From the sequence record MK514281.1: a stretch of DNA of 64,000 nucleotides; one strand, 5' to 3'. The translations under genes were made by a program, and so were the position numbers. Shown piece after piece: positions 6,006-44,379 of this stretch. The notes beneath the pieces are model-generated. The model was not told the origin of the DNA and did not search any database. It was given only the letters and a program-made list of their open reading frames with translations. Within the stretch, counting starts at the first letter, position 1. Each line of letters opens with the position of its first letter.

Positions 6006-6034
6006 AAGGGACTTCGGTCCCTTTATTTTTTTTT
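6006..6034 (+). terminator. Rho-independent terminator
   Basis: AAGGGAC-TTCG-GTCCCTT followed by TAT9. Confidence 0.85.
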
Positions 6035-7817: not shown

Positions 7818-7851
7818 GAGCTCACCCTAACCGGTGGGCTCTTTTTTTTTT
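7818..7851 (+). terminator. Rho-independent terminator
   Basis: GAGCTCACC-CTAACC-GGTGGGCTC followed by T10. Confidence 0.85.
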
Positions 7852-7908
7852 GTCTTCTTTTTTTTTGTTCGGGGATTATATGTAGTCCATATTAGCTAAG
7901 AGGACATT

Positions 7909-32201: not shown

Positions 32202-32250
32202 CGGCATATAGGCCCTCCATTACGGAGGGCCTTTTATGACATCTTTTTTT
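32202..32250. terminator. Bidirectional terminator
   Basis: CGGCATAT-AGGCCCTCC-ATTAC-GGAGGGCCT-TTTATGAC then a T tract; genes converge here. Confidence 0.8.
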
Positions 32251-32264
32251 TTTGGTTTACAGCG

Positions 32265-32711
32265 TTATACCAGGCGCTGAGTTAGCTGCGAACTATATTG
32301 AATAGCGTGATAGGTCGCAGGTTTCTCAAGCTGCTCGGTGCAGCGGTAGACCGGGGTCTTCATAAAAGGACAACCGGCATTCATTAATGCCTCACGGTTG
32401 CTGGGCGACTCATCAACGCGAATCACCACATCCGTGGACTGGAAGCCAAAGACTTCCCGCTTCGTTGCAGTATATTCTGCATCCAGCACCACGATCTTAC
32501 GGTTGATCACCAGCTTCACGGCCACCGGGTATTTGATTACCAGGTCTGACCCTAAGCCCGCCAAGACAAACTTAATGACAAACTTCTTAAGTCCATTTAG
32601 CAACTGACTCTCACTGGCCCAACTTTTAACAATCTGCAGCATGTGTGTATTTCCACTCATATAAGGGGAAGTTAAGAAAAGCAACCTGAGGGCCCGTCCG
32701 TGATCCCTCAT
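32265..32711 (-). CDS. Hypothetical protein (start uncertain)
   Basis: Minus-strand ORF filling the gap down to the bidirectional terminator. Confidence 0.5.
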   Translation of the reverse strand: MRDHGRALRLLFLTSPYMSGNTHMLQIVKSWASESQLLNGLKKFVIKFVLAGLGSDLVIKYPVAVKLVINRKIVVLDAEYTATKREVFGFQSTDVVIRVDESPSNREALMNAGCPFMKTPVYRCTEQLEKPATYHAIQYSSQLTQRLV

Positions 32712-32717
32712 AATGTA

Positions 32718-33182
32718 TTACTTCATACCGTCCAACTGCTTTTGAAGTTCCTTTAACTGACGGCTTGCATCCGGCGTCTCGGCGTCATGATCTCTGATCG
32801 CTTCAATAAACGACTTCCGTTTGCAATAAGGATACTTCATCCATTTATCAAATGACAAACCAAATTTGCCCAAGATATCCGCACGCAGATATTCGAGCTC
32901 ATACTTTCGATACCCAACTAACGCCAGCGAGTCTTCCTGCTCGACCTGTAAGATTAACGAGAGCGGCGAGGTTTCCACGTTATGGTCAATAATCCCAAAC
33001 GTGTCATCGTAAAGCTCTGTTAATCGAATTAGTGGATACTCCCAGTTCTCGGTAAGAAACGTGGGGTTTTCTAACGCGACATCCCAGGCATCGGACCGAT
33101 CACTTTCGGACAGACCGAAATCCCAATGGATTAGATGTCGGCTTGATCGAACGTCTGATTCAGTGTATTCGTCATTAGGGTA
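32718..33182 (-). CDS. Second (GT-like) segment of tail/baseplate assembly chaperone, probably reached by -1 frameshift
   Basis: Frame open from 33230 to 32718 with no ATG/GTG/TTG above 32978; FGLSFDKWMKYPYCKRKSF resembles GT/gp51-type C-terminal segments. Confidence 0.65.
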   Translation of the reverse strand, partial: YPNDEYTESDVRSSRHLIHWDFGLSESDRSDAWDVALENPTFLTENWEYPLIRLTELYDDTFGIIDHNVETSPLSLILQVEQEDSLALVGYRKYELEYLRADILGKFGLSFDKWMKYPYCKRKSFIEAIRDHDAETPDASRQLKELQKQLDGMK

Positions 33183-34750
33183 AAAAAAACCCGTGCTACG
33201 TTCAGCGGGGTGTACGCAGGGAAGGTGTTGCTAACTAGCGGTTGACGCGCCTGGCAGTTCGGGCATTTCCAACGCGGTACTGCGACTACACCGACCGTTA
33301 CCCGGTTGATGAACTTGTTCAGCTCTTCAAAGAACGGTTTACGCATATCCGGGGTTGCACTGAATTGCTTCAGCAGCAATGCCACGTCATCGGCCGACTC
33401 AACATAGTTGCCATCGTTGAACTCGATCTTAGTCACCCAGTGGGCGTAACCACGCATGGAGGACAGCGCTGCCTGTTTGTTGATGTGCTGCTCACGCTGC
33501 TCACGCGTCATGCTGTCGTTGAAGCTGTCGGTGATCGCTTGTTGAATACCGTTGATCCAGGCATAACCCGCTGCATTCTTATCTTCGAGTGATGGCACCC
33601 GCAGATAGAACTTCACATCTTTCACAGTGATGACATTGTCTTTCATCACTTCAAAGCCGGTCTGATAGGCAATGACCTGCTCGACGGTACGGCCGCTGAA
33701 GTGAGACATGTGCGCACGCTGGGTTGGTGACAGACGATTGTTGTCAATGATCGACAGACGAGAGACGTTAACTTTCGCTGCTTCAACATGCACACACTTC
33801 TTCGGATCGGCGGCACAGGCAGTGACCATGTGGTAGCCAGACTTAAAGCGTGCGCCCAGGTAGGCGTTAGCGATCAGATCGAGATCCTGCTCTTTGATTA
33901 ACGGCAGCAGGGTTTTCTTATCGGAGACACCGATGCTGCTGTCAGTGACCATACCCAGCAGGAAGTCAGTCATGTGCTTACGCACCACGACATCCAGGTT
34001 GTTAAACACCAGACCGTTGGTACGACGACCGAGGATCGCTTTCTCAGCCATGATGGCGGTTTGCATATCCACAAACTCATCATCACCGGCAATCAGCAAC
34101 GTAACCCAGATACCAGAATGTGGCAGCGGCAGATGGACATAGTCGCCCATGTTCATCACACCACGAGCACGCATCACTGCCTGTGGACCGGTCAGCAGTT
34201 TAGTGCCTTCGGTACTGCGCTTCACTGGCGGGCGAGAAACACCCTGCACTTTGTTGCTGTCAAGCAGAATACCTTGCAGCCACTGCGCGCCATCCTGACG
34301 AATGGTCAGATTCAGACCAGAACGGTACGACAGGTTGGTGATGGCATTACTGGCCAGGGATAGCCAGATCATCGCTTTATCAGCACCGTACAGACTGACG
34401 ATCTCTTTTAAGATCTTCTTGTCTTCGGTGTTGGTGTCGATCTCGTTGATCAGCGCCGTCGCTGCATCGTAATCCTGATGCATGATAGACAGCACACCTT
34501 CCGTGCCGACATCCTCCATGGAGTTCAGCTTTTCAATGATCGGGTTCTGATAGAGCGGATCGAACGCCTGCTCAACGGCTTCAACTTCAGGTGCTTCAGC
34601 TTCGCCCTGTTGGCCGGTTTCTGCTGGCTCGGGATCGGTGCCAATAGTACCAGTAGTCGCCGGACGGCCTGGATCAACTTCAGGAATACCAGAGTGGTTT
34701 TCTTCAACAGGCTCTTGCTGTGACAGAATGGATGGGTTATCACCGGACAT
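33131..34750 (-). CDS. Putative tail-tube/baseplate-hub assembly chaperone (T4 gp26-like; phiKZ gp77 position)
   Basis: Acidic N-terminus, C..DPKKC and WKCPNC Zn ligands, FFTL near the C-terminus. Confidence 0.6.
   Translation of the reverse strand: MSGDNPSILSQQEPVEENHSGIPEVDPGRPATTGTIGTDPEPAETGQQGEAEAPEVEAVEQAFDPLYQNPIIEKLNSMEDVGTEGVLSIMHQDYDAATALINEIDTNTEDKKILKEIVSLYGADKAMIWLSLASNAITNLSYRSGLNLTIRQDGAQWLQGILLDSNKVQGVSRPPVKRSTEGTKLLTGPQAVMRARGVMNMGDYVHLPLPHSGIWVTLLIAGDDEFVDMQTAIMAEKAILGRRTNGLVFNNLDVVVRKHMTDFLLGMVTDSSIGVSDKKTLLPLIKEQDLDLIANAYLGARFKSGYHMVTACAADPKKCVHVEAAKVNVSRLSIIDNNRLSPTQRAHMSHFSGRTVEQVIAYQTGFEVMKDNVITVKDVKFYLRVPSLEDKNAAGYAWINGIQQAITDSFNDSMTREQREQHINKQAALSSMRGYAHWVTKIEFNDGNYVESADDVALLLKQFSATPDMRKPFFEELNKFINRVTVGVVAVPRWKCPNCQARQPLVSNTFPAYTPLNVARVFFTLMTNTLNQTFDQADI
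33182..33190 (-). other. Candidate -1 slippery site G-UU-UUU-UUU
   Basis: GTT TTT TTT (V-F-F), 16 codons before the stop of the 539-aa ORF. Confidence 0.65.
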
Positions 34751-44327: not shown

Positions 44328-44379
44328 CAGCATAAGGAGAGGCCTCGCGCCTCTCCTGTTTATGCCGTCTTTTTTTTTT
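44328..44379. terminator. Bidirectional terminator
   Basis: CAGCATAA-GGAGAGGC-CTCGC-GCCTCTCC-TGT-TTATGCCG then T10. Confidence 0.85.

Follow-up and report, generated by a model that had tools for sequence, protein, structure and literature searches.

The window analyzed in the current study is a 64,000-nucleotide stretch of the genome of Erwinia phage Rebecca (MK514281.1), a RAY-like Agricanvirus. On its minus strand lies a 539-aa ORF (gp269), the homologue of phiKZ gp077, 201phi2-1 gp136, PhiPA3 gp074, Goslar gp081 and RAY gp267, which is chimallivirus core gene cg18. It is followed by a small gene annotated as gp268. The neighbouring genes are homologues of phiKZ gp078 and gp079 and of the virion RNA polymerase gp080, and no gene longer than 436 aa lies within 6 kb. 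The features of the locus are as follows.

33131..34750, minus strand: 0-frame ORF, gp269 (539 aa plus stop).
33182..33188, minus strand: putative slippery heptamer U_UUU_UUU in the 0-frame register (P-site and A-site codons F522 and F523), part of the T8 run 33182..33189.
33131..33181, minus strand: dual-coding overlap, with the last 16 codons and stop of the 0-frame protein and the first 17 codons of the -1 frame extension.
32718..33182, minus strand: -1 frame continuation, 154 codons plus stop, predicted C-terminal extension of the trans-frame product.
32718..32978, minus strand: annotated gp268 (86 aa from GTG 32978), read here as the C-terminal part of the extension rather than a complete gene.
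33144..33174, minus strand: weak bulged hairpin starting 7 nt after the heptamer, a possible stimulator that is not significant in this phage.

The first-pass annotation had described this arrangement from the sequence alone, and its observation was confirmed base for base. The 0 frame reads GTT TTT TTT ACC (V521 F522 F523 T524), followed by 16 codons and TAA. The -1 frame is open from 33230 to 32721, with its stop at 32720..32718 (window coordinate = 40801 minus the coordinate in the extracted Rebecca locus), and contains no ATG, GTG or TTG before the GTG at 32978. In the window there are six runs of T8 or longer, where 2.6 distinct matches are expected by chance, but only this run lies inside a long ORF, the other five being in open segments of 63 codons or fewer. 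Run length and frame arrangement were identical in 16 independently sequenced RAY-like records, indicating that an assembly artefact is very unlikely.

Conservation of the T run and of the start-less overlapping frame, which had been named beforehand as a test, was examined in related loci and found to be far beyond chance. In 70 of 70 loci, including phiKZ, PhiPA3, 201phi2-1, PCH45, a Bacillus phage and 56 metagenomic contigs, the homologue of the downstream small protein lies in the -1 frame of the upstream gene, and that frame is open across a T5-T9 run at the same Phe-Phe motif. The overlap is 43-358 nt, and the open -1 frame begins a median of about 38 nt before the run. None of the 150 best representatives of 1317 homologue clusters carries the extension in frame. 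A homopolymer miscall, or a gene recently broken by a frameshift mutation, can be all but excluded by this distribution, since the loci come from many laboratories, metagenomes and hosts and both frames are under purifying selection. Although homopolymers are error-prone on some sequencing platforms, nothing specific to this locus supports such an artefact.

The heptamer itself is conserved at synonymous positions beyond the requirements of the protein. The P-site codon is TTT in 55 of 55 distinct sites, whereas TTT makes up only 34% (299 of 878) of Phe codons elsewhere in the same ORFs, and seven loci use no other TTT in the ORF. The base before the P-site codon is T in 44 of 55 sites by first count (44-47 of 55), against 18.6 of 55 expected, although the preceding amino acid varies (V, L, I, T, A, S, G). 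After a register check, 51 of 60 distinct sites were canonical U_UUU_UUN. The Z position is free (T 37, C 16, G 1, A 1), as expected for X_XXY_YYZ. The register is, however, partly confounded with the conserved Phe-Phe motif of the 0-frame protein. The remaining nine of 60 sites have G_UUU_UUN, a weaker heptamer of the PhiPA3, FLC9 and Noxifer type, and in several of these an ATG lies just before the FG motif of the extension, so independent initiation may contribute there.

Substitution patterns supported coding in the -1 frame from the site onward. In nine clade pairs the substitution rate at 0-frame third positions fell from 0.45 upstream to 0.14 in the overlap (Fisher p = 2.5e-11), and directly after the 0-frame stop substitutions peaked at the third position of the -1 frame (0.43). 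Between Rebecca and RAY, all five differences in the 150 nt before the run are silent in the 0 frame, while all five change the -1 frame, one of them to a stop. The -1 frame is therefore constrained only from the run onward.

It is possible that the two proteins are products of two ordinary genes, the downstream one being made from GTG 32978, from a non-canonical start or by re-initiation near the 0-frame stop, with the T run merely encoding a conserved Phe-Phe motif. Every record is annotated in this way, as two hypothetical genes, and in 21 of 55 loci a canonical start lies upstream of the FG motif; 201phi2-1 has a TTG overlapping the stop, and PhiPA3 has an ATG three codons before FG. An ATC overlapping the 0-frame stop is shared by the Rebecca, AH06, SA002 and SNUABM_37 clade, but is absent in Proteus phage 10. 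However, the extension residues aligned to F22, G23, Y58, H67, P73 and E83 are near-invariant (44-53 of 55), and in 34 of 55 loci the open -1 frame contains no ATG, GTG or TTG upstream of the FG motif. In Rebecca, the near-invariant residues F22, G23, Y58, G63 and H67 all lie upstream of any canonical start codon, and the PHROG and tblastn matches extend 68 conserved codons upstream of the GTG. RAY and MadMel carry an upstream in-frame ATG giving an annotated 182-aa ORF, but this ATG is cut off by a stop in Rebecca, and the stretch before the run evolves as non-coding in the -1 frame, so this ORF was rejected as the real gene. The two-gene reading is considered improbable, as it does not explain the -1 relation in 70 of 70 loci, the fixed TTT and preceding T at synonymous positions, or the suppressed synonymous change in the overlap.

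A downstream stimulatory structure shared by all loci was sought and rejected, the mean z-score of the 60 nt after the site (-0.34) being equal to that of controls (-0.37). In Rebecca the weak hairpin gave z = -1.25 over 122 nt and z of about 0 over 60 nt, and no conserved upstream Shine-Dalgarno-like element was seen. In one subclade with U_UUU_UUC, a different, strong hairpin of 8-10 bp lies 7-9 nt downstream, with two pairs changed on both sides, which is the classical position for a -1 frameshift stimulator.

The same protein products would arise by transcriptional slippage, if the phage or host RNA polymerase stuttered on the T run so that a fraction of the mRNAs differed from the genome in run length and were read conventionally into the -1 frame. 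Most runs are T7-T9 (46 of 60), lengths at which polymerase stuttering occurs in bacteria, no general downstream stimulatory structure was found, and these phages use their own highly divergent multisubunit polymerases. On the other hand, 14 of 60 sites are only T5-T6 and yet keep the arrangement and register, which argues for a ribosomal rather than a polymerase slip, and selection acts on the register (X and Y positions fixed, Z free) and not on run length. The spacing of the subclade hairpin is also typical of ribosomal frameshifting. Transcriptional slippage appears unlikely, although the two mechanisms are not exclusive.

Taken together, the T run is most likely a programmed -1 ribosomal frameshift site (probability roughly 0.74). 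In this view most ribosomes translating gp269 would read through GTT TTT TTT ACC and release the 539-aa protein after a further 16 codons. A fraction would slip back one base while two tRNA-Phe occupy the P and A sites on U_UUU_UUU, and continue for 154 codons to give a product of 523 + 154 = 677 residues. This product would share the whole folded body with the short form and carry a mostly helical C-terminal extension, of which gp268 would be the last 86 residues. The analysis establishes the site, its register and conservation, the coding constraint in the -1 frame starting at the site, and the lack of a start codon. That slippage takes place on the ribosome, that the trans-frame protein is produced, the ratio of the two isoforms and their function are inferred; the frameshift as such is strongly supported, but from comparative sequence alone, with the two frames analyzed as separate pieces.

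The first-pass annotation had interpreted the locus as a probable G/GT-style chaperone pair, with a downstream segment resembling GT/gp51 segments, recoded in the chimalliviruses but usually annotated as two separate hypothetical genes. This interpretation was supported in part. A programmed -1 shift was strongly indicated by comparison, and its generality in chimalliviruses and the annotation as two hypothetical genes were borne out, whereas the chaperone identity was not supported. The protein is 539 aa long, not about 100-150 aa, and had no Pfam or NCBIfam hit, and sequence searches of both pieces against the PDB returned nothing. A confident AlphaFold model (pLDDT 87.7, pTM 0.87) found no PDB fold better than E = 0.12, and structure matches in BFVD to proteins labelled tail assembly chaperone had E above 0.4. 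The 154-aa piece hit only function-unknown PHROGs and nothing in Pfam, NCBIfam or PDB, so the claimed likeness to GT/gp51 segments found no support. The AlphaFold model of this piece, built from an 11-sequence alignment, reached a pLDDT of only 50.5.

Full-text searches found no published description of this frameshift. Searches for a frameshift in phiKZ-like or nucleus-forming phages, and for gp77, returned nothing relevant, the gp77 of other papers being different genes. The PCH45 transposon paper and the phiKZ Grad-seq paper do not mention the locus in their main text.

If the frameshift is real, the locus would need re-annotating in more than 200 sequenced jumbo phages (221 records hold the gene), including the model phages phiKZ, PhiPA3, 201phi2-1, Goslar-type phages, PCH45 and RAY. 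A conserved domain of 150-170 residues would be added to the chimallivirus core genome, currently missing or truncated because it has no start codon; in phiKZ only an 80-aa remnant, PHIKZ076.4, is annotated. Conserved at about 20-25% protein identity, it would be one of the more deeply conserved phage frameshifts outside the tail chaperone genes, and it occurs in phages that separate transcription from translation. It would also provide a handle on a core gene of unknown function, with two isoforms and a probable morphogenetic role, and is open to checking with kinds of proteomic and sequencing data that already exist for these phages.

From a weak fold likeness, and from the protein not being named among virion components, it most likely acts in virion (baseplate hub or tail) morphogenesis as an assembly factor made in two isoforms, although this functional assignment is weak. 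A two-isoform morphogenetic chaperone is a plausible functional analogy, but not a family membership. A more far-reaching and doubtful possibility is that all phiKZ-like jumbo phages, including non-Pseudomonas lineages, a Bacillus phage and a 167-kb marine phage, make a fixed-ratio pair of cg18 isoforms by an ancient -1 frameshift. The pair would then be the functional counterpart of G/GT in these contractile-tailed giants, arisen in an unrelated protein fold, and the extension would be an unrecognised additional core domain of the family.

The fold likeness is to T4-type baseplate hub assembly proteins (Pfam PF12322, T4_baseplate); T4 gp26 and gp51 are listed as hub assembly chaperones (PMC3004832). 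Foldseek against BFVD linked the model, at ranks 19-22, to proteins labelled T4-like baseplate hub assembly protein or hub subunit (E 8.8e-6 to 1.1e-4), with a TM-score of only 0.30-0.31 on the query and 0.49-0.56 on the target and an rmsd of about 8 A. Four of 89 metagenomic homologues weakly matched PF12322 (best E 0.0011) and one touched PHROG 150, baseplate hub, but the window protein had no Pfam hit even at E = 1, short of the PF12322 gathering score, and ten named homologues had none. Like gp51, the protein is not reported in the mature particle: the Goslar virion structure text names no gp081, and the 201phi2-1 gp136 record carries no mass spectrometry note, unlike its neighbours gp138 and gp139, but this is absence of mention only. 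In contrast to the T4 proteins, for which no frameshift is known to be described, it is two to three times longer and has four invariant cysteines (C312, C319, C496, C499).

In the T7 capsid gene 10A/10B, a -1 frameshift a few codons before the end of a phage late gene likewise gives a minor C-terminally extended isoform, but the protein family is different, the extension is shorter, and 10B is a virion component, whereas cg18 is not reported among virion proteins. The E. coli dnaX tau/gamma site shares a bacterial-type X_XXY_YYZ homopolymeric heptamer read by two identical tRNAs and, in one subclade, a downstream hairpin at a similar spacing. However, dnaX slippage truncates the protein whereas here it would extend it, the slippery codons are UUU and not AAA/AAG, and no conserved upstream Shine-Dalgarno-like element or strong hairpin is seen in Rebecca. 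With the tail assembly chaperones made by -1 frameshift (lambda gpG/gpGT, and the P2 E/E' type of contractile-tailed phages), the locus shares a slippery heptamer at the 3' end of a gene tentatively associated with phage morphogenesis, a predicted short and a longer trans-frame product with a common N-terminal body, and a downstream frame that has no start of its own and is routinely mis-annotated as a separate gene. It differs from them in showing no sequence or fold relation, in a body of 523 aa rather than about 100-140 aa, in not lying between the tail tube and tape measure genes, and in a predicted shift 16 codons before the stop of a large folded protein.

The region is 100% identical to Erwinia phage Rebecca (MK514281, Agricanvirus ray), is 97-99.4% identical to 15 other RAY-like records and is 80% identical to Erwinia phage AH06. 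In the GenBank record the 539-aa ORF is annotated as gp269 and the 86-aa ORF as gp268, both hypothetical. The elements described in the first-pass annotation were re-examined in the sequence, and all of them were found as it had described them:

33131..34750, minus strand: the upstream ORF, encoding 539 aa, whose 0 frame reads GTT TTT TTT ACC at V521-F522-F523-T524, with 16 more codons before TAA
33182..33189, minus strand: the T8 run
33230 to 32721, minus strand: the open -1 frame, with its stop at 32720..32718
32978, minus strand: GTG, the first ATG/GTG/TTG of the -1 frame

The arithmetic of the predicted fusion length given in that annotation, 523 + 154 = 677 residues, is also right. Of the six runs of T8 or longer in the 64-kb window, this is the only one that lies inside a long ORF. 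Five runs of T9-T10 on the plus strand (6026-6034, 7842-7866, 32244-32253 and 44370-44379) are all intergenic. Runs of this kind are more numerous in the window than in shuffled sequence, and two are followed by the same GTCTT. They are probably terminator tails or promoter-region elements of the phage.

A further feature was detected directly after the stop of the -1 ORF:

32688-32709, minus strand, with a tail to about 32674: a hairpin followed by a T-rich stretch that is shared with AH06 (locus L002:5745-5790)

The hairpin reads GAGGG...CCCTC in Rebecca and GAGGAGT...ACTCCTC in AH06, so both arms differ. It is terminator-like, but it was not called by a consensus scan. The annotated ATG of gp267 (32711) lies at its foot. 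PHROG 11625 aligns only from residue 24 of gp267, and the AH06 homologue is annotated from the later ATG, indicating that the gp267 start may be 23 codons too early.

A tblastn search with the 154-aa piece of the -1 frame gave matches from its first residue in AH06 (80% identity), in Salmonella phage SA002 (44%) and Erwinia phages pEa_SNUABM_37 and pEa_SNUABM_48 (49%), and in Proteus phage 10 (40%). In each case the match overlaps the end of the upstream gene, and all of these phages carry T_TTT_TTT ACC in the same register, as T8 or T7.

The upstream gene is a core gene of the family. With the 539-aa protein as query, tblastn found it in 221 phage records from Pseudomonas, Erwinia, Salmonella, Serratia, Ralstonia, Vibrio, Klebsiella, Burkholderia, Xanthomonas, Bacillus and other hosts. 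GenBank notes equate it with phiKZ gp077, 201phi2-1 gp136, PhiPA3 gp074 and EL gp47. In the supplement of Prichard et al. 2023 (PMC10299810) it is listed as core gene cg18 (Goslar gp081, phiKZ gp077, RAY gp267), a hypothetical protein that is not unique to chimallin-encoding phages. A library-wide HMMER search found 1317 clusters at 50% identity. The best 150 of these all end about ten residues after the position aligned to residues 525-539, so no in-frame fused form was seen among them.

For a survey of the junction, 10 GenBank loci, 56 IMG/VR loci and 6 further GenBank loci, including phiKZ, were collected. The upstream and downstream homologues were located with HMMs built from two alignments (A1 and A2), always as separate single-frame pieces. 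In all 70 loci with enough sequence (two truncated contigs could not be scored), the downstream homologue lies in the -1 frame of the upstream gene, and that frame is open across a T run at the homologous Phe-Phe motif. Among 60 distinct junctions the run is T5 (3), T6 (11), T7 (19), T8 (24) or T9 (3). The heptamer in the 0-frame register is U_UUU_UUU (33), U_UUU_UUC (16), U_UUU_UUG (1), U_UUU_UUA (1), G_UUU_UUU (6) or G_UUU_UUC (3). phiKZ itself reads ACT TTT TTT ACT, and its -1 frame is open for 165 codons after the T7 run of PHIKZ077. The first start in this frame is the ATG of the 80-aa PHIKZ076.4, 255 nt after the run. PHIKZ076.4 was added in a later re-annotation of phiKZ (2456-2698 of the phiKZ locus, L067) and corresponds to only the last half of the open frame. 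The same arrangement was found in a Bacillus jumbo phage, AgentSmith (L009; U_UUU_UUA, first start 262 nt after the run), and in a 167-kb marine phage, Halocynthia phage JM-2012 (L068; T8), suggesting that the feature may be older than, or wider than, the nucleus-forming family.

Codon usage was used to assess whether the run is more than a conserved Phe-Phe motif. In the 55 distinct sites of the first 64 loci the first Phe codon is TTT every time, while elsewhere in the same ORFs TTT makes up 34% of Phe codons (299 of 878), and seven loci use no other TTT in the ORF. The naive product of the per-locus probabilities is 10^-33, which overstates independence but not the direction. The base before this codon is T in 44 sites (47 after shifting the register by one codon in three loci), against 18.6 expected, although the amino acid at this position varies among V, L, I, T, A, S and G. 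The last base of the heptamer is free (TTT 37, TTC 16, TTG 1, TTA 1), and in the two Leu cases the T run is kept although the amino acid changed. This is the pattern expected of X_XXY_YYZ.

Alignment of the -1 pieces revealed near-invariant residues aligned to Rebecca F22 (52 of 55), G23 (48), Y58 (51), H67 (46), P73 (50) and E83 (53). In Rebecca the near-invariant residues F22, G23, Y58, G63 and H67 lie upstream of the GTG at codon 69, and in 34 of 55 loci there is no ATG/GTG/TTG anywhere in the open -1 frame before the FG motif. Substitution rates were determined in nine independent pairs of related phages, and an analysis of 17 pairs gave the same picture.

Substitution rates at 0-frame codon positions 1, 2 and 3 in nine independent pairs of related phages
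120 nt before the run: position 1, 0.12; position 2, 0.07; position 3, 0.45
Overlap (run to 0-frame stop): position 1, 0.04; position 2, 0.06; position 3, 0.14
90 nt after the 0-frame stop: position 1, 0.13; position 2, 0.43; position 3, 0.18

After the stop the fast position is the third position of the -1 frame, and the drop at synonymous sites in the overlap is significant (Fisher p = 2.5e-11). In RAY (locus L011:2985-3530) and MadMel (protein P0015) a 182-aa ORF (PHROG 13274) is annotated from an ATG 28 codons upstream of the T run, inside the upstream gene. In Rebecca the same stretch holds a stop in that frame. The five differences between Rebecca and RAY in the 150 nt before the run are all silent in the 0 frame, and all five alter the -1 frame, once to a stop, indicating that the annotated start of the 182-aa ORF is probably spurious.

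A ribosomal -1 slip of two tRNA-Phe on U_UUU_UUN fits the register data, the short T5-T6 sites and the hairpin of one subclade, which is 8-10 bp long, has a spacer of 7-9 nt and has two pairs changed on both sides. Metagenomic subclades with U_UUU_UUC or T8 (loci L032, L033, L034, L036, L039 and L044, about 8-50 nt after the heptamer, and L040, L042 and L047) carry a strong 8-11 bp hairpin 7-10 nt after the heptamer, with a conserved core and flanking pairs changed on both sides. Rebecca has only a weak hairpin, and no family-wide structure signal was found. Efficiency may therefore be modest, or polymerase stuttering on T7-T9 runs may contribute; the two routes give the same proteins and cannot be separated with sequence alone. 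The first-pass annotation is supported in part: comparison strongly indicates a programmed -1 frameshift at the run, but the G/GT chaperone identity is not supported. The site, its register and the coding constraint on the -1 frame were shown by sequence comparison, whereas slippage itself and the role of the products are inferred.

One set of lineages (L006, which is PhiPA3, L052, L053, L055, L061, L072, which is FLC9, and L054, L057 and L066 of the Noxifer type) has G instead of T before the TTT codons, with runs of only T5-T6. In several of them, but not all, an ATG lies two to four codons before the conserved FG motif, which may represent a transition toward independent initiation of the downstream protein. 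However, PhiPA3 and 201phi2-1 still share conserved -1 frame residues upstream of that ATG, and both routes may operate there.

The 539-aa protein gave a confident AlphaFold model (pLDDT 87.7, pTM 0.87) and has invariant cysteines at 312, 319, 496 and 499. No fold in the PDB matched the model. In BFVD, after its own family, it matched proteins labelled T4-like baseplate hub assembly protein or baseplate hub subunit, at E 9e-6 to 1e-4. PF12322 (T4_baseplate) was the only Pfam family touched by more than one homologue (4 of 89), and one homologue touched PHROG 150, baseplate hub, but the Rebecca protein and ten named homologues touched neither. T4 gp26 and gp51 are listed as hub assembly chaperones in a review (PMC3004832). 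A morphogenetic assembly role is therefore a reasonable but weakly supported inference. The Goslar virion structure paper does not name gp081, and the 201phi2-1 gp136 record has no mass spectrometry note, unlike its neighbours, although these are absences of mention only. The extension is predicted to be helical with low confidence, and no annotated relatives were found in searches of PHROGs, Pfam, NCBIfam and the PDB.

No description of this site was found in 8.4 million full texts, and the core-genome paper does not mention a frameshift. The proposed mechanism is the ordinary heptanucleotide -1 frameshift. The predicted architecture, with a long isoform sharing the body of a short one and a downstream frame without a start, is that of lambda G/GT and of T7 10A/10B. 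Membership in the tail assembly chaperone families fails on fold, size and gene position.
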